Source: Adineta vaga
Lineage: Eukaryota > Animalia > Rotifera
Reading direction: 5' to 3'
Assembly (NCBI GenBank): GCA_021613535.1
Contig: CP075492.1
Span: forward strand, 3,844,001-3,908,000
Length of the DNA stretch: 64,000 nucleotides
Of this stretch, positions 154-20,302 are shown one piece after another (position 1 is the stretch's first letter; every line of letters starts with the position of its first letter). Both the position numbers and the translations under genes were made by a program. The notes beneath the pieces were generated by a model that was not told the origin of the DNA, made no database searches, and worked only from the letters and a program-made list of their open reading frames with translations.

Positions 154-757
154 CTATTCTTTATCGTCTTCATCATCATTCACATAATATTCTTCATCTT
201 GTTCTTCCTCTTCATCAAAAATCGATTCATCTACTGCTGCTGGTATGCTTGTACCACCTCGAGTGTAAGAAGCCTAGAACAATCCAATAAAAAATCATGT
301 ACGATAGAAATACGGTTACTTACGTTCTGTTTCACATGAAATACTAAATTTAACATACCAATCACAACTGGTATTTCTTTTTGTAACTTTTGTAATTCGT
401 TTTTAATAGGTGTTGCTGATAAATAATGTCGAATACGGATCATTTTCTTTCCACTTGTACATCTAATCGAAAGAAGATATTCGAATATTCTTAGATTATG
501 AATCTATCAATATACTTATCAAATAAAATATTTGAACGAGTTGTAATTCTGTAAAGTTTATTCATTACACATGAATACTTATATTTATCGGCGGCTAATT
601 TGTCTCTCTCATTAAGACCAGTTAAAATTTCATAAATTATAGATAAATCATCGGCAAGAGTTGCACACGTTTCTTTGTTTGATGTAACTGTTGCAACTAT
701 ATCCATACCATATTTGATCAACTTGATCACTGTTACAATACCTACTGGACTTGACAT
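154..757 (-). CDS. Stand-alone MLKL/HeLo-like N-terminal four-helix-bundle protein with acidic tail (166 aa, 3 exons)
   Basis: Exons 757-516, 462-324 and 273-154 are joined by GT-AG introns of 53 and 50 nt that keep the frame. The protein reads MSSPVGIVTVIKLIKYGMDIVATVTSNKETCATLADDL...LFDKCTSGKKMIRIRHYLSATPIKNELQKLQKEIPVVIGMLNL...DEEEQDEEYYVNDDEDDKE*. The 'V..NKE.C..La' and 'rfl.a..i..eL..l' patterns resemble the MLKL N-terminal domain. Confidence 0.65.
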
Positions 758-1526
758 ATCGTGATGGAGCAGAAAAACTCTTACAGTTTAATAGTTGTAA
801 CTCTTTTTGATATCAACAATATGATGTGAAATAATGGACTTTGTTTTGTTATCAGAAAACAAACGTTTACTACCTACCTGTCACATGATAAGACAATCTT
901 TCCTTTCTACGAATCATATGCACATAAACTTATTGTTGAAAGTTTCGAAAACCTTATCTCATTATTCACATATAATTAAATATGAATTGCACATTATGTT
1001 TGAAACAATTATAGAAGACTTCTTGAAGTACGAACAAAGTATATTATACTTTTAAGAATATTTTGATTCATGTCCAATTTTCTAAAGATGAAACTAGATT
1101 AATTAGCAGAAGATAAAAGTTACATCCTGTCATTAGTACTTACGATTGGCATCAACCCAAGTTTTCTATCTTGTCTTGTACAGTTTAGAAAAGCTTATAA
1201 TTTAGCTGATAGTTCGATGTTATGTCACCATTTATCAAATTGATATTTTCTCTAAAAATGTGTCCTATTAGTATTATTTTTCTTATTGTAATAGTCATCT
1301 TGAATTGTAGAGTGATAAGAAGGAAAATGTTGACAAAGCATAATAGATCAAATTCTTTCAAAAGATTCTAAGTAATGTGTCGATGAATCTCAACGTTGTA
1401 TTTACACGAAAAAGTTAAATTCAAAAGAAATAGATTCATCTATTTCATACATTTGTCTGACTTGAACAGCTTTTCAATTGAATTATATACACTATCGTAC
1501 TGAATTCCTGCTGTTAAAACTCATGA

Positions 1527-4500
1527 CTAAAGACCTTCGAGTTTCGAAATCGTATTTCTATTAATTTTCTGCGCTGTCTTATAGCATTCGTGAGCTCTTG
1601 TGGATAATCCCATCTTTTCATATACTGAGCCAATGTTGTTGTAAGTTGTAGCGAGGGTGGAATGTTCCGAGGGAAGAGATTTTTGTTGAATGCTGAGTGC
1701 TTTATTGAACTTTTCGAGAGCTACGTCGTTCTTTTCCAACTGAAAGTACACTTTACCGATGTTAATCAAAGTAGAGGCTAAGTCTGAATGATCGGGAGGA
1801 AGAGATTTCTCTTGAATTCCGAGTGCCTTTGTGTAGGTTTCATTCGATGTTGAATAGTTTTGCATTTCGAAATATATTAATCCAATGTTGTTGTAAGTAG
1901 TGGCTAAATTTGGATGGTTTGTATAAAGGATTTGTTTTTGAATAGCAAGTGCTTTGTTATAGTATTCAAGTGCTTTTGAATAATTTTTTATCGTTGAATA
2001 TACTGAACCAATATTGTTGTATGTAATACCTATAGCTGGATGATTAGACTGAAATGATTTTTGTTGAATTTCTAATGCTTTGTTGAAGTGAGCAAGTGCT
2101 GTTAAATTCTTTCCTTTTTTGAGCTGTATTTTCCCCATATTGTTGTAAGTTATAGCCAAATCTGGATGAGTGAGAGGAAGAGATTTTTGTTGAATTTCTA
2201 ATGTTTTGTTAAAGTTTTCCAAAGCTTTTGTGTATTCTTCGTATGTAAGATCTAATTCACCGAAATTGTTGTAAGTCGTAGCCAAGTCGATATGATCAGC
2301 AGAAAAAGATTGTTTTTGAATTTGTAATGCCTTATCATAGTTTTCACGAGCTCTTTTATAATCTTCCTTCTTGAGAAACATTGAGCCGACATTGTTGTAA
2401 GTAGCGGCTAAATCGGAATGTCCAAGAGGAAGATGTTTTTCTTGAATTTCTATTGCCTTGTCGAAGTAGTTACGAGATTTTAGGTCTCCTACCTCATCTA
2501 AATCGACTAGATCAATGTGAATGTAGGTAACGGCTAAATTTGGATGATTTGATGCAGGATTCTTTTTTTGAATATTCAGTGCCTTGTTATACTCTTTTCG
2601 AGCTTTTGAGAAGTGTCCGCACTTGAAGTATACTTCACCAATATTGTTATAAATTACAGCTAAATCAGGATGATCGCTAGAAAGATAATTTTGTTGAATT
2701 TTGAGTGCGTCGTGGTACTCGTCAAGGGCTGTTTTATACTGTGCCCTGGCAGAATAATATGTACCGAAGTTATTATGAAGGATGGCTATTGTTTGATTGT
2801 TTATGAGAGGAAATTGTCGTTGAACCCTCAGTGCTTCTATATAACTCTTAAGAGCTGTTGAATGATTTCCTAGTTTGAACTGTACCTCACCAATACCATT
2901 GTAAGTAATTGCTAAAATCGAATGATTTGGAGAACGAGTTTTTTGTTGAATCCCAAACGCTTTGTTAAATTTTGTAAGAGCTCTTGAGTATTCCCCCAGT
3001 TTAAAATATGCTTCACCAAAGTTGTTATAAGTTGTAGCGGAATCTGGATGATTTGAAGAGACATCTTTTTGTTGAATATCTAATGCTTTTTTATAGTTCT
3101 CGAGAGCTCTGTTGTATTCTCCTGTGTAAGAATACATTAAACCCATGTTGTTGTAAGTAGTAGCTAGATCTTGATGATTAGAAGAAGGAGATTTTTGTTG
3201 AATTGACAGCACGCTTTTGTAATCATCAAGAGCTGCTGAATGCTCTCCCATGTAGGAATGTATTAGACCAATTCGATTGTAGATGGTGATTAATTTCGGA
3301 TGATCAGCTGAAAGTTGTTGTTTTTGAGTATCTAGTATTTCCAGTGCTTTTGAGTAGTTTCTCATCTTGAAATATAGTTCAGCAATAATGTTGTAGCTCA
3401 TCGTTTCGTTCAATGGATCGGAAGGAGGTAAGATTTTGTGATTTTGGGAAATCTTATTGTACTTTTGCAAAGATTTTGAATCATATGGTATACTGTCATG
3501 CCCTAAAATAACGTTATTAAAGATAGAGACTAGAGTGTGATGAGTTGAAGAAAATGATCTATCTATCTAAATGAGTATCATAATTAATTTGGACATTCAG
3601 TTACTATAGAAGATTAGAAATAGTGGTCAACTGAATCGATTATATATATATATATATATGAATAGTTAAATTCAATAAAAGTTAAGTTGCATTCTTACCT
3701 GAAATATTTTCGAATTTATATTCGAGTTCACTTATATTTTTACCAATTTGATTCCATCCTATTTGAACTCTCTTGATTTCTATGATAGACTCATTATTTT
3801 CTTTTTTGAATCCATGAAATTCCATAAAACACCAAATAAACACAAGCATTAGTGCTACGGTGGTGACGAACAATGATAAATTGAATAGGAATGAGTATAT
3901 ATTTCGCAATTTCTTTCTTATTGATTTCAATAACAACTTTTTTCTATTATTTTTCATGGTAGCTACGTTACTCTCATACATATCTTTATCATATTCATCC
4001 ATCTGAAAGTCACCGTTATTTTGTTCACGTCGATTAGCTAAATTCAAGTTCAAATCAAATATAAATATCCGCTTATTTTACTTATATAACGTACGCAATT
4101 CGAAAGATAGTTTATCTTTCTCACCGTCTCGTTGTCCAAACATTTGATTGCCAACGGGCGGCATAATTTCCGATAAACTTTGAAATGAATAATTTAGATC
4201 AACATCACGATTTCTATTCAAATTTTCTAGACAGAATCGAAAAACAAACAAATATATTTTGAAAAACAGAATAGATTTACCTCTCAATAGATTTGCAGCA
4301 TCAAAACATTGAATTTCATCGAATGCATTGATGAGATAACTGAAATCTCGATTATTTATTTTATCTCGATCGAAAAGACAATCCATCAGACGTAAAGTCC
4401 CACTTAATGATGGATCATCTCGGATTCTTCGTGGAAGATCTTCATCACCACCAAGATAAAAATGCAGACGTGTTCGATCATCAGCAGTAAGACGATCGTG

Positions 4501-4539
4501 AATATTCAATATGGTAGCACGTAAACGAAAATTATTCAT
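1527..4539 (-). CDS. Type II membrane receptor: DED - TM - coiled coil - ~14 42-aa TPR repeats (901 aa, 4 exons)
   Basis: Exons 4539-4281, 4226-4095, 4037-3699 and 3502-1527 are joined by three phase-1 GT-AG introns (54, 57, 196 nt), total 2706 nt in frame. This unites ORFs 4078-4575, 3682-4053 and 1527-3470. It has a DED-like N-terminus (MNNFRLRATILNIHDRLTADDRTRLHFYL...CFDAANLLR), a basic patch then a TM segment (IYSFLFNLSLFVTTVALMLVFIWCFM), and HPDLAxTYNNIG repeats. Confidence 0.85.
3641..3659. repeat. (TA)n microsatellite in intron 3 of the DED-TPR gene
   Basis: tatatatatatatatatat run. Confidence 0.9.
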
Positions 4540-5140
4540 TAATACTCTTTCTTTATCCTTAAGAAGAAAAAACATATTTTCAAGAAATCACTTGATTTTT
4601 TTTCTCGTTAAAACGAACCATGGTATTCGCCGAAGAGTTATATGTTTAGATCGAATTAATAGTTTGTTATTTTCGTATAGAATATTTCATAAATGAGAAA
4701 GGTTATTCATTCCCCACATCACACTTCGATCTTCCAAGAGGCAATTAACTTTCTCTTGGAAAGATAAAGAAACAAACATATACTGATGAAATATCAAATT
4801 CAATGAGAAAAACATGATTTTCTAGTGAAATGTCAATTAAAATACGTGATATTTCATTATTTGTTTTTTTAGACAAGTTAAAACGAACACAAAACGTTTT
4901 GAAAGTGTATACATTCTTATCTCGTTACTTTTTCTTTCCCATATATTTTTTTATATTTGTATTTTCAGTTAATGACTCATAGAATACGAAAATCTGTTCT
5001 TATGTCATTACATTCATTTGACTCATGTTATTATTTGTACAAACGAGAATGAAAAAGCAACAACAACGACAACGAAGCTATGATTTCTTAACCATACACA
5101 CTTGTTCTCACTCAGACATTTCACAATTGATGATCAAACA

Positions 5141-6346
5141 ATGGGGGTTCGTAAAATCAAAAGAATCATTTCTTCATCGTTTTAATTCTTATTTCTATAG
5201 TCAGGTGCGTCCATATCGAAAATAGAAGACGATTTTTTCAATATTTGCTCAAGTGGAGATATTAAAAATGCTCGTCGCTTGTTGCTCACGATGACATATA
5301 AAAAATTCAATCGTCAACGACGAAATGGAAATACTCCTCTTCATATGGCTTGTCTAAACGATCATAAGGATATTATCATTTTATTACTCAACGAAGAAGA
5401 TGTTTGTGCTAGAACTTTACGTAATAAAGATGGCAAAACTGCTTATGATTGTGTGAAATCACCTGAAATTCGACAATTATTTCGTCGTTCTCGTGAATCA
5501 ACAGTCGATCGATTTAGTGAAAAGAATCCAACATCATCTCTTCAACCAATTCTCTCACCAAATGATGATGAAATAAAGATTTCTCATGAACAAATTCCCG
5601 ATGATTGGGTTCGTGGTTATACAAATGCAAAGCAAAATTTTGATGGACAATTTATGCTTGCTCTACAAAATGCGCCATTACTATTACGAGCATTGATGAA
5701 AACACGAACCATCAATGAAGCTGAAGATACATTCGAAATTTTTCTTGAAAAATGTATCGAACATCAACCAAATAAACGTTATTTAATTCGCGAAGAATAT
5801 AAAAGATATAGACAAACAAAAAATGTCGAACATTTATTAACCATTTATACATTTGAAACAATTGTTTACAAAGCTTTACAACAAGAAATGAATGCTTATA
5901 CTACATTACTTTTTCTTAATTTGAAAAAATTAGTCAAACGATCATATCAAGGAAGAACCTATCGAGGTGCTCAAATGACTCAAATAGATATTGATGCGTA
6001 TACATGGGCACAAAAAAGTAAAGACTTTCTTTTAGAAACACGTCTATTTCAATCAACATCAAAGACAAAAAATGTCGCAGAAGTATTTGGAGAAGCTAAT
6101 CCAAGATCGGACAAGTATGGTGTTGTATTTGCCTATATATTTGATGAACAGTGTCCAACTGCTATTGATCTTCAAGGTATTTCATATTTTGAAGAAGAAG
6201 ACGAAGTTCTGCTGTTTCCGTTTACATTATTCAAAGTGGATAATATAATTTTTGTTGAAGCATTAAGACATTATGATATTTCTCTTCGATATATTCCATC
6301 ATCGAAAAAATCATTTCTTTCATCATGGTGGAATGCAAAAGAATAA
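5141..6346 (+). CDS. N-myristoylated ankyrin + R-S-E clade (arginine-type) ADP-ribosyltransferase
   Basis: A 6-nt coding exon 1 (ATG GGG, 5141-5146) and a 54-nt intron (5147-5200) give the N-terminus MGSGAS. Ankyrin motif GNTPLHMAC...NKDGKTAYD. ART motifs YRG, FQSTS and ISYFEEEDEVLL. Confidence 0.85.
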
Positions 6347-6404
6347 ACATATTATTATTTCAAAATTGATCTTAATAAAAAAAACAATAAAAAAGAAAAT
6401 GTTT

Positions 6405-7377
6405 TTATTCTTGGATTTTCATTGAACTATCAACTGATAGTTTTGTCTCTACAGGAATAGTGTCTTTTTCTGTGGGATTGACATCTTTTAGAGGCGGTAA
6501 AACTTTTGAAGTCGATGTTTCATCAGTTACAGATACTTCAGTAGCATTCGGTAAATCTTGTTGAGTATCAGAAAGTTGTGCGACGGGTACAACAGTAACT
6601 TGAGTATTGCCTTTTTTTCTGCCACAAAAATGTTTCCAAGTTTTATAACCACAATATATACCGTAAATAATTGAACATATGCATAAAACGATATAGACAA
6701 TTTCACCGTATGTTTTTACATAACCCAAACATTCAGACGATCTAGGAGATAAGTAGAACATTGCTTGTGAACCCTGTAGAAAAATTCATTTCATATCAAT
6801 CTAAATATCAGTTGATTACTAATTCATTCTTACCGGTCCTATAGACCAACTTAGAACACCACTACACATGCCAACTGTAAAAATAAATGCACGACGAAAT
6901 GCTTTTTCACTAGTATTATATTTGATGACTGTTGCTACTAAAATCTATAATCAATGAAATGATATGATGAATAGAAAAAAGAAGCATGAAACAAACCAGA
7001 AGAATCAAGGCAGTGACAAGAATTATACTCATAGCGCCTAATACAATCAACCAAATTGGTATTGATGGTTGACGAGGTAGATAACAATGTCGATTGTATG
7101 CAATTACACCGAATATTAATGAAACTATTCCAATAATACCAATAAGAAATAGGAAAATAATGATAAATAATTTCTTCATTAAGAATTTAACATGAATTTT
7201 GATTGAGTCGACACCCACTCTTCCAAGGTTTTCTTGTAACGGCTTTATTTGACGATCACGAAATAGATCGATAATTGGTTGATGAGCTTTTGCATTGAAT
7301 TGAAAGCGTGCTTCCTAGAAGAAGAAAAAAAGATCACAGCTATTCTAAACATTATCTTTCATCTATCTTACTCCCAT
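6405..7377 (-). CDS. Multi-pass membrane protein, TMEM272-like
   Basis: MG micro-exon at 7377, then ORFs 6916-7218 and 6405-6761 joined by short introns. There are several TM segments, the motif HCYLPRQPSIPIWLIVLG, and a low-complexity C-tail. Confidence 0.6.
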
Positions 7378-7904
7378 CGTTTCGTTTTGATATACTTTTC
7401 ACTAACGAATTTTTCGAGTCTCAATAGTGGTTTATATACAGCTGTGCTTGAATAATAACCTGAGTCAACAATAGCCGTGTTGCAATGTAAATAAAGGCAA
7501 AAATCATATTATTTTTGTTTCTAAGGAATATTTGTATTAATCAAATGACGGTAGTTGAAAAATATAAAATCATGCTAAGAAAGAATTAACATATTGACAT
7601 CATTTCGAAATAACTTACACTTGTTCGCCTTTTTCATTCAATACGTCTGCGCAAATAGTAAACCACATTAAAAATAATCAATCAATCTAGTAAATAGATT
7701 GTTTTTTAGCGTAGAATGTATTTATCGTAAAATCGTTTTAATGAAAAGAAGTACAGAATCTCTTCAACAACATAAAATTTCATTTTATTGGAGAAAAGAA
7801 TTGCTTTTACAGAACAAATGGTACATTAAAAATATTTCTATTTAGTCTCTGTAAAGAACAGCGTTTTCTTATCTTTTAATAAACTATCAATTAAAGAAAT
7901 AATC

Positions 7905-8655
7905 ATGCCATTTCATTACAAAAAAGATGTATCATTTGATATATATCAAAAGCCATTACACAAGAATATCTTAAATGGCAAAAGATAACACATCAAAAGA
8001 TTCTTCTCCAAATCAACGTTCAGGTTATTATAATCAAAAACTAGAAGATATGTTCTTTCAAAATCTTGTGGAAAATGCACGTAAAGATCAATTTGATATG
8101 CCATAATATGAAATGTTACCAGTTACAGATGATATTCAACGTCAATTATGTTCTCAACCAAACAAATCTTATTTCAATCAATTCCAGTAATTAATTATAA
8201 AGATTTAAATATTAATTTCAATACTTCATTACGTCAATGTTCATTTGGTATTGTTTATAGAGGTCGATGAAGAAATCAAAGTGTTGCTATTAAATAATTA
8301 CATTTAAATAAATTAACTCGACAAGAATAAAGTTCATTTGTTAAAGAGATAATAATCATGTCAAATTTAGGTAAACATCAAAATTTAGTTGATCTATATG
8401 GTTATACATTAGAACCACTTTGTTTGATTCAAGTACATTCAGTAACTGATTTTGCAAGAACATCATCGTCTATCGCATCATCAAGAACATTCAATGAAAT
8501 TATTCAATCGACCAAGAATCAGTTCGAAAACAAAAAAATTTTTGAAAAATTTTATTGAAAAATGTTGGCATCAAAACCCTCAATATCGACCGGTTATCGA
8601 ACAAATTTTGAAAGATTTGAAAGCATCATGTGTTAAAATCCGTGATTCTTTTTAA
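7905..8655 (+). pseudogene. Decayed TKL-like protein kinase
   Basis: Reads SFGIVYRGR*RNQSVAIK*LHLNKLTRQE*SSFVKEIIIMSNLGKHQNLVDLYGYTLEPLCLI, then jumps to subdomain XI (FIEKCWHQNPQYRP). It has in-frame stops and the HRD/DFG core is deleted. Confidence 0.8.
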
Positions 8656-18953: not shown

Positions 18954-20302
18954 TTAAGTTCGTCTACGATACCAGATAAATTGTAATTGATCGATGAGTA
19001 TTCCACATTTTCCTTTTACATAACCTATTGTAAATCCATCGAATTCTTCACTAAATTTTTCATCGGAAGGTTCGCCGAATAATGGACTTTGTCGTCCTGT
19101 TGCTGTGGTAAACTGCAATCCTGTTACGACTACAATATTATGTTCCGTCTCATCACTCATCTGGACCATCTGATGAGCCAAATATCCTTCAACTTTGACG
19201 AATCTTTCCCATTCATCTAATATAAATCTTTTTGATTTCTCAAACGATCGTATTTCGTCACCTCGAATCGGACCATAGGTAATGTTTTTATTGTCATTAG
19301 AATATGAGTAAATAAATTGAATAGATGTTAAAATATCATCGCCATCAATTTCTCCATAGATTCCACGAAGATACGAAGAACATGTGAAGTTATTCGATGT
19401 TGAATCATCGAAAGAACCACCACCTGATCCACCGAATTTATTACCAATGAGTCTGATTGTTCTCTCAAAGAAAACAAAAAGCAACAAGTTTTTCAATTGA
19501 AATTTTCATAAACAAGATCTAACGTTTTTCATTATTTAACTCAGATATTTTATTCATTTTCCAGATTAAAAGACTTGCTAATATTCCAATTGCCACCAAC
19601 GATAAAAGTACATAGAATAAAATAAAAATACATACCAATGAAGATTTATTCAATTTTGATCGATTTAATGATGATTTATCGTGATCACTTATCGTATTAT
19701 TTAATAAAGAAATATTTGTTTCGTCATTTATATTACGAGCATTATTGCTACGAGAACTGTTTTCTTGACTAGCAATAGGTGCATTATATATATCTAAAAT
19801 TTCGATCGATTGAGAAGCAAATTAAGAATTAGGTTTACTCACTATTATTTATAATAGTTACATCGTGTTCCTCTTCTTCTGAATCTCGAGGAATATCCGG
19901 TAAAAATCGACCTTGTATCAGTGGCATTATTGATACTAAACTTTGAATCGATTGATGTAAACCATTGGATTCTAGTTGTTCTCTGTATTCTATAGAAATA
20001 TGCTCATATTAAAAAGAAAGTGATATTTCGATGAAGGAAAAGATGAGACCTCTCAACAGTTGAGCAGCATCGATACATTCAATTTCTTCAAATGCTTCGA
20101 TCAGAAAAGTAAAGTCTTTTTCATTAATTTTATCTTGATCAAAAAGAGATTCCATAAGAGTAAGTGTCCCATTAAGTGACTTATCATCTCTTATTCGTCG
20201 AGGAACATTGTTACCCATAAAGAAATGAAAACGTTGTCGATCTGCATCACTTAGACGAGCATCGAGTTTTAGAATGACGCTACGTAATCGATATTGATTC
20301 AT
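18954..20302 (-). CDS. Type II membrane receptor: DED - TM - jacalin-like lectin
   Basis: Exons 20302-20050, 19989-19843 and 19793-~19524 are joined by phase-1 introns (60, 49 nt). The TM segment is LVCIFILFYVLLSLVAIGILASLLIW. The jacalin domain reads GNKFGGSGGGSFDD...TGLQFTT...GKCGILIDQLQFIW. The last splice junction is ambiguous by one nucleotide. Confidence 0.75.

Follow-up and report, generated by a model that had tools for sequence, protein, structure and literature searches.

A 64-kb window from chromosome 3 of the bdelloid rotifer Adineta vaga (C3:3844001-3908000; the window is the whole stretch of DNA that was analyzed, from a genome of 100.8 Mb in six contigs) begins with a close group of genes from death- and immune-type families (Table 1). 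These include a small gene for a stand-alone four-helix bundle (4HB) related to the N-terminal domain of MLKL, a gene for a putative receptor with a DED-like domain, a single transmembrane (TM) helix, and a TPR array, a gene that combines ankyrin (Ank) and ART domains, a gene for a small multi-TM protein, and a protein kinase pseudogene; at the very edge lies the 5' end of a paracaspase-like gene, referred to here as C14-ART. The locus is AT-rich (27 to 36% G+C), with short introns of the GT-AG type. The first five of these genes had been listed in a first-pass annotation of this DNA, and all five were found at its coordinates when open reading frames (ORFs) were listed, Pfam scans were run, and the sequence was read directly. 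In the database searches, the receptor, Ank-ART, and C14-ART genes were treated exon by exon, and only the 4HB was searched as a whole, by way of an identical database protein, P0001. The results identify the 4HB gene as a divergent member of the MLKL_N superfamily and favor, as its setting, an island made up of expanded gene families over the clustered necroptosis-like module that the first-pass annotation had proposed.

Table 1. Features at the beginning of the window (positions are those of the window)
Feature	Position	Strand	Exons and basis
Paracaspase-like Peptidase_C14 gene, 5' end	1-62 (ATG at 62)	-	Continues beyond the window; C14 exons, C3:3843193-3844062
Stand-alone MLKL_N-like four-helix-bundle gene	154-757	-	Exons 516-757, 323-462, and 154-272; 166 aa
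DED-like/single-TM/TPR receptor gene	1527-4575	-	Four exons with by-eye GT-AG junctions; closed frame of 903 aa
Receptor, death-fold exon	4281-4575	-	By-eye splicing
Receptor, second exon	4125-4226	-	By-eye splicing
Receptor, TM and stalk exon	3699-4037	-	By-eye splicing
Receptor, TPR_12 exon	1527-3502	-	By-eye splicing
Ankyrin and ART (R-S-EXE type) gene	5049-6346	+	Exons 5049-5150 and 5201-6346; 415 aa by model
Small multi-TM protein gene	6405-7508	-	ORFs and by-eye splicing; at least 4 hydrophobic segments
Protein kinase pseudogene	~8187-8655	+	Three-frame translation

The stand-alone bundle and its family

The by-eye model of the 4HB gene translates into a protein of 166 residues that is identical to P0001, annotated in the database as “hypothetical protein I4U23_011786 [Adineta vaga].” Contigs of four RNA-type runs, which come from two studies, carry precisely this spliced form and lack both introns (50 and 53 nt); the RNA evidence used throughout consists of contigs from such public runs. 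The 750 bp upstream of the gene are not covered by these spliced contigs, from which it follows that the 4HB gene is transcribed by itself. P0001 consists of the bundle (residues ~7 to 129), a linker that contains Arg-Gly, the motif (V/I)DE(S/T)(I/V)F, and an acidic tail (EEYYV..DD) at the end of the protein, which stops 37 residues past helix 4. No kinase domain was found in the gene when the transcript ends were examined, and the structural model contains no brace helices; lacking both the brace and the pseudokinase, P0001 is a bundle-only variant and not an MLKL. There are two copies of the 4HB within A. vaga, the one described here and a paralog at C4:9253043 (50% identity).

The combined evidence shows this transcribed and spliced gene to be a divergent member of the MLKL_N four-helix-bundle superfamily, in agreement with its original designation as an MLKL-like 4HB. 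An hhalign comparison of a 31-sequence profile of the 4HB family with the eight A. vaga MLKL_N loci gave a probability of 92.2% (E value of 5.9e-7 over 110 columns), with an aligned region that takes in the whole bundle (query 13-128 against template 3-112). The Pfam domain MLKL_N (PF22215) is matched by 6 of 17 relatives of P0001, and P0011 (36.7 bits), P0014 (28.6 bits), and P0031 (28.2 bits) exceed its curated cut-off of 27 bits; the Adineta steineri homolog P0002 scores 17.1 bits across the whole domain. An AlphaFold2 (AF2) model of P0001 built with the family alignment has a pLDDT of 75.9 (mostly >85 in the core) and four helices at residues 7-23, 28-46, 50-83, and 100-129; the alignment was needed, as the single sequence gave an unusable model with a pLDDT of 42. 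When the model was compared with 48,161 solved chains using VIA-align, which is independent of Foldseek, the first two ranks were taken by mouse and human MLKL (4btf_A, with a Z score of 10.1 and a root mean square deviation of 2.4 over 99 residues, and 6ux8_A, with a Z score of 9.9), AtMLKL3 ranked fourth (Z score of 9.1), and the CC-R domain of NRG1.1 ranked eighth (Z score of 8.3). The shape neighbors of the model in the ESM Atlas are plant MCAfunc, DUF7792, and DUF7032 bundles.

Several results weigh against this assignment. P0001 by itself has no Pfam match, even at an E value of 10, so that a PF22215 scan of the genome misses the locus, and a phmmer search of the PDB sequences with P0001 returned no match. 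Foldseek comparison of the model with the PDB was not significant (best E value of 0.66; 0.8 for MLKL), and helical bundles in common arrangements often reach a Z score of ~10. Since the former is not significant and the latter not decisive for this class of folds, the MLKL-like assignment rests on the combination of the evidence listed above. In the hhalign register, L104 and Q108 of P0001 stand in place of a Phe and an Asn that do not vary among the eight A. vaga MLKL_N loci (F99 and N103, both of which AvMLKL-1 requires).

Among 1.84 billion representatives, an exhaustive search with HMMER detected only 22 relatives of P0001 at E values of 1e-3 or less, mostly of 130 to 170 residues. All those with species names are labeled as bdelloid (A. 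steineri, Didymodactylos carnosus, Rotaria socialis, and R. magnacalcarata). P0001 is the founding member of a small and mainly bdelloid family, whose bundle-only proteins have a conserved C-terminal tail in the place of the MLKL brace and pseudokinase. Three short elements of this tail are conserved past helix 4 in sequences labeled Adineta, Didymodactylos, and Rotaria. The first is an Arg with a small residue after it (SYTR-GG in A. vaga), located 4 to 9 residues past helix 4 and present in Adineta, Didymodactylos, and several Rotaria members; the second is the (V/I)DE(S/T)(I/V)F motif, and the third is the acidic end, EEYY(V/I)xDD. The conservation of these motifs across the three labels argues that the tail, although modeled by AF2 with low confidence, is functional. 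In the metagenomic relatives P0014 and P0031 (encoded on 5.9-kb contigs), both with bundles above the Pfam MLKL_N cut-off, a PBZ zinc finger, a poly-ADP-ribose-binding domain, stands where the acidic tail would be, which hints at a link between MLKL_N bundles and ADP-ribosylation.

The domain characteristic of the 4HB family is also found (E value of 5e-10) in P0016, a 437-residue protein encoded at L031 8113-9426 on a 13.4-kb Logan contig. This contig is 18% G+C, 93% coding, and intronless and encodes in addition a thymidine kinase, a Peptidase_C48, a DEAD helicase, and RING and F-box proteins. It looks like a piece of a giant-virus or similar genome that carries an MLKL-like bundle.

The C14-ART gene and other neighbors

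The span considered in the first-pass annotation ended just short of the C14-ART gene, the ATG of which lies 92 bp past the stop codon of the 4HB gene on the same strand. Exon 1 of this gene encodes a Peptidase_C14 domain (Pfam E value of 5.5e-27), and its best solved relative is by far MALT1 (E value of 4.8e-14, versus 2e-3 for metacaspase-9 and 4e-3 for CED-3). The alignment with MALT1 includes the GHG and DxCR motifs of the His/Cys dyad and the equivalents of D365 and D462; exon 2 had no match in the PDB, and the third acidic residue of the S1 pocket could not be aligned. There is no prodomain, death domain, or Ig domain, and the catalytic domain begins at about residue 10. According to the RNA contigs, the apparent stop of the C14 region is removed by a 57-nt intron (L004 9136-9192), which results in an in-frame join to an ART ORF. 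The ART-domain exon (L004 7808-9135) matches Pfam ART with an E value of 1.1e-6, and the fusion transcript is carried by a 1,596-nt contig, the whole gene spanning C3:3841808-3844062 (L004 7808-9193 plus L027 1-962). Judged by eye, the ART domain of the fusion lacks the usual catalytic Arg. In the intergenic segment (positions 63-153), a TTTTAG acceptor is found 4 nt upstream of the C14 ATG; together with the short spacing between the two genes, it looks like an operon-type, trans-spliced arrangement. A bicistronic transcript was not seen, as no RNA contig bridges the 82-nt gap between the 4HB and C14 sequences, and contigs of this kind cannot settle the point.

On its other side, the 4HB gene is located directly 3' of the receptor gene and on the same strand, as had been reported, so this adjacency is real. 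The N-terminal exon of the receptor scores 22.3 bits against the Pfam DED domain (PF01335; E value of 1.6e-4), below the curated cut-off of 35.9 bits. An ESM feature search placed the same exon with DED clusters (score of 0.91; 195 shared features), its 10 best hits all belonging to the death-fold clan, and a search of the PDB sequences returned nothing except a chance match to GST. The TPR array matches Pfam TPR_12 with an E value of 1e-138. The hydropathy profile contains a single hydrophobic helix with a strongly basic N-terminal flank, followed by three N-x-S/T sequons in the stalk; the basic flank predicts a topology with the DED in the cytosol and the TPR array outside. Only partial, low-depth RNA contigs represent the receptor, and they do not capture the introns, so that the exon junctions in Table 1 are by-eye readings. 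The first intron (4227-4280) is 54 nt long, in frame, and free of stop codons, and its retention would add a hydrophobic stretch of 18 residues behind the DED. Another DED-like exon, which shares 59% identity with that of this receptor, is found on the minus strand at positions 20051-20302 and belongs to another member of the same receptor family.

The Ank-ART gene is positioned head-to-head with the receptor gene, as described before, with the two ATGs separated by 474 to 510 bp and not by the ~600 bp originally given. Its product matches the Pfam Ank and ART domains, the latter (PF01129) with 21.8 bits against a curated cut-off of 22.3 bits, and the YRG, STS, and EDE motifs can be read in the ORF of this putative transferase. 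The description of this ART as membrane targeted was not confirmed: hydropathy analysis finds no hydrophobic segment in either exon, and no other targeting feature was found. The multi-TM protein encoded next to it has only subthreshold matches in Pfam, to CD20 and MARVEL.

In the kinase remnant, the glycine-loop, VAIK-type, and helix-C motifs are broken by three in-frame stops, the catalytic and activation region is missing, and a frameshift precedes the end of the C-lobe; the last piece still matches Pfam PK_Tyr_Ser-Thr (E value of 8e-4). Its description as a decayed TKL kinase is therefore right as far as the decay is concerned, whereas the TKL assignment depends on weak matches to RIPK4 (0.005), AtMLKL3 (0.009), and TAK1 (0.27), and ITK is also among the weak best PDB matches. 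Such similarities fit an origin from a TKL- or TK-like kinase and nothing more specific. A search of the A. vaga genome found no paralog of the remnant. Descent from an MLKL-type kinase was considered and rejected, the tblastn comparison of its pieces with the eight A. vaga MLKL_N loci having produced only a generic C-lobe match (E value of 0.004).

Synteny, family expansion, and possible partners of the bundle

Gene neighborhoods were compared for the C4 paralog of the A. vaga 4HB gene, two A. steineri copies, and contigs of R. socialis; contigs labeled Didymodactylos were too short for a judgment. The linkage of DED, 4HB, ART, and kinase genes that the first-pass annotation had suggested checking is not kept in any paralog, ortholog, or homolog examined; unlinked orthologs were among the outcomes that the annotation had itself named as refuting its module, which is thereby largely refuted. 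The C4 paralog is surrounded by genes for a seven-transmembrane (7TM)-like protein, a dynamin-like GTPase, and a GH31 enzyme. A collinear homoeologous block was sought by tblastx comparison of 74 kb at this locus with 30 kb around the C4 paralog and rejected, as the 4HB is all that the two regions have in common. The neighbors of the R. socialis homologs are unrelated to those at the A. vaga locus; A. steineri P0035 is found among 7TM, ankyrin, and NRPS-like genes, and the upstream neighbors of A. steineri P0002 are a gene of unknown function for a 253-residue protein and an ABC transporter gene rather than a DED receptor. When the contexts of these homologs were searched by tblastn with the DED, TPR, Ank-ART, and TM exons, nothing was found except for a generic ART match of 24% identity. 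The closest paralog of the receptor, located at C3:3651785-3654608 and 89% identical at the amino acid level, has neither a 4HB nor a C14 gene beside it. A fragmentary and seemingly decayed Ank-ART remnant lies head-to-head with it (the duplicated segment being C3:3651050-3654608), and the receptor and ART genes have therefore been copied as a unit independently of the 4HB.

The one recurring linkage is that of the 4HB gene with the C14 gene that follows it, found in both Adineta species: downstream of A. steineri P0002 and on the same strand lie a C14 gene (~60% identical) and then an Ank-ART gene, and the other flanks differ. Trees of C14 exon 1 and of 4HB exon 1 were built, and neither decided orthology.

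The families represented at the locus are greatly expanded in A. vaga, with 52 or more DED loci, no fewer than 418 ART candidates, 70 C14 matches in ~50 loci, and 11 MLKL_N loci; 101 C14 proteins were listed previously (Nowell et al. 2024, PMC11258130). A literature search returned nothing on DED proteins in bdelloids and nothing relevant on rotifer paracaspases or ART/TPR proteins. Members of the expanded families co-localize, for example, at C3:3.4-4.6 Mb, C1:12-14 Mb, and C4:9.58-9.74 Mb, the last of which is another such island, with two MLKL_N loci, several C14 genes, and two ART loci in ~160 kb. Because the DED, C14, and ART families comprise tens or hundreds of genes that are clustered in islands, adjacency of immune-looking genes in A. 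vaga is weak evidence of function.

With a probability of roughly 0.6, the locus under study is a part of an island of lineage-expanded death- and immune-type families and not a conserved necroptosis-like operon. The island makes chance a plausible, though not a demonstrated, cause of the adjacency of the DED, ART, and kinase genes. The receptor and the head-to-head Ank-ART gene behave as one segmentally duplicated unit that came to lie upstream of the 4HB by happenstance. The 4HB itself would be a membrane-acting executioner that is restrained (or targeted) by its tail, by analogy with the bundles of MLKL, plant MLKLs, CC-R, HeLo, and the canonical A. vaga MLKLs (AvMLKLs), the N-terminal domains of which kill HEK293T cells (Wang et al. 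2024, PMC11476962). The MALT1-like C14-ART gene is the best candidate for a functional partner of the 4HB, since it is the only neighbor common to a second species. Three observations count on the other side: the placement of a 4HB gene between a DED gene and a C14 gene is unlikely on a uniform-genome estimate; the 4HB-C14 adjacency, seen in just two congeneric species, could be inherited microsynteny devoid of function; and neither the closest C14 paralogs (66 to 67% identity) nor the other 4HB copies are paired.

A tentative and rather doubtful extension of this partnership is that the presumably Arg-specific C14(-ART) protease cuts the 4HB after the Arg of SYTR/GG, so that the acidic tail is lost and the bundle is freed to act on membranes, much as gasdermin N-domains are released by caspases. 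Such gating would be consistent with the order and shared strand of the two genes in both Adineta species amid otherwise different flanking genes, with the closeness of C14 exon 1 to MALT1, including the aligned His, Cys, and two acidic positions, with the Arg and small residue that precede the other tail motifs in Adineta, Didymodactylos, and several Rotaria members, and with the presence of the 4HB, C14-ART, and receptor transcripts in the same RNA-type runs. However, the third S1-pocket acidic residue is the one that could not be aligned, and the P4-P2 residues of the proposed site do not suit the preference of MALT1 as generally known. Moreover, the C4 paralog, A. steineri P0035, and the Rotaria homologs all keep the tail without a C14 neighbor, the closest C14 paralogs have no 4HB next to them, and orthology is left undecided by the trees. 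The tail is also a low-confidence part of the AF2 model.

It appears improbable that the bundle-only protein is a regulator and not a killer, acting on the canonical A. vaga MLKLs as a decoy or co-oligomerizing inhibitor or else serving as an adaptor that recruits other proteins through its tail. The lack of the pseudokinase switch and brace helices, the substitution of residues that are invariant in the canonical A. vaga MLKL_N domains, and the three short tail motifs, which are typical of docking sites, would all agree with such a role, as would the replacement of the tail in relatives by a PBZ finger, suggesting a recruitment module. Nevertheless, the membrane-disrupting activity resides in the isolated bundle in MLKL, plant MLKLs, CC-R, and HeLo domains, where this is established, and in A. 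vaga as well (PMC11476962).

The module envisaged in the first-pass annotation, in which the DED-TM-TPR receptor senses a ligand and signals through its DED to the 4HB, with the ART and the former TKL kinase as further parts of a co-inherited necroptosis-like set, is not supported, because its linkage is not conserved, the families concerned are huge and co-localized, the kinase is dead, and no RIPK was found in Rotifera (Wang et al. 2024, PMC11476962); it must be regarded as unlikely even though the genes are packed within 8.5 kb, the receptor N terminus is assigned to the death fold, the bundle is MLKL-like, and both genes are transcribed, given that the receptor and ART genes were duplicated without the 4HB (and with a fragmentary ART copy), that the receptor and 4HB transcripts are separate, with the uncovered 750-bp gap between them, that the kinase pseudogene has no catalytic core and no specific relation to MLKL-type kinase domains, and that the 4HB has neither a death fold nor any other known DED-binding element.

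Comparison with known cell death systems

In necroptosis of the RIPK1/3-RHIM-MLKL type, the executioner depends on an active kinase, and the signal of RIPK3 is received by the C-terminal pseudokinase of MLKL; no active RIPK-type kinase is linked to the 4HB gene, and the only kinase nearby has three stops, a frameshift, and no core. The 4HB resembles the MLKL N-terminal domain (PF22215; AvMLKL-1 to -4 in PMC11476962) in length and topology and shares with it the N-K-x-x-C-x-x-L sequence between helices 1 and 2. In contrast to MLKL, it has no brace and no kinase or pseudokinase domain, for which reason it also lacks a RIPK-type phospho-switch, and ends in the conserved acidic tail instead. The gene structure is different, too, with three exons compared to the apparently uninterrupted open frames of 511 to 527 codons at several of the A. 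vaga MLKL_N loci. Rotifer MLKL-type bundles were reported only in 2024 and solely as bundle-plus-kinase-like proteins (Wang et al. 2024, PMC11476962).

The fold class is common to the 4HB, plant MLKLs, the CC-R/RPW8 domains of NRG1 and ADR1, and the fungal HeLo and HeLo-like domains of HET-S and HELLP. Executioner and sensor genes of fungi are often adjacent. Unlike the HeLo systems, the 4HB has no amyloid-forming (RHIM- or PP-like) motif and no adjoining NLR partner, and its adjacency to the receptor gene is not conserved. With FADD, caspase-8, and c-FLIP, the receptor has in common a putative N-terminal death fold that is DED-like, if below the Pfam cut-off; in contrast to these proteins, its DED is joined to a TM helix and a TPR array, and the neighborhood contains no DED-caspase or FADD-like gene.

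The C14-ART protein is closest to MALT1, with which it aligns at the dyad and at two S1 acidic residues, but it lacks the death and Ig domains of MALT1 and is spliced to an ART domain. Gasdermins and their proteases (caspases in some systems and products of neighboring genes in bacteria and fungi) provide an analogy only: here, too, there is an N-terminal domain that would be membrane active, a C-terminal part that could be inhibitory, a protease-type site in the linker, and an adjoining protease gene, whereas the gasdermin fold is unrelated to that of the 4HB and cleavage of the latter is hypothetical. By this analogy, bdelloids might possess an MLKL-type executioner that consists of the bundle only and is controlled by proteolysis and not by a kinase, with the MALT1-like C14-ART protein cutting at the Arg-Gly site, a possibility to which we would assign only a small weight. 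If true, it would represent gasdermin-style logic applied to the MLKL fold in an animal without RIPKs. Irrespective of the protease, an expressed bundle-only family with a conserved tail suggests a possible alternative to the known MLKL switch, through either removal of the tail or binding to it.

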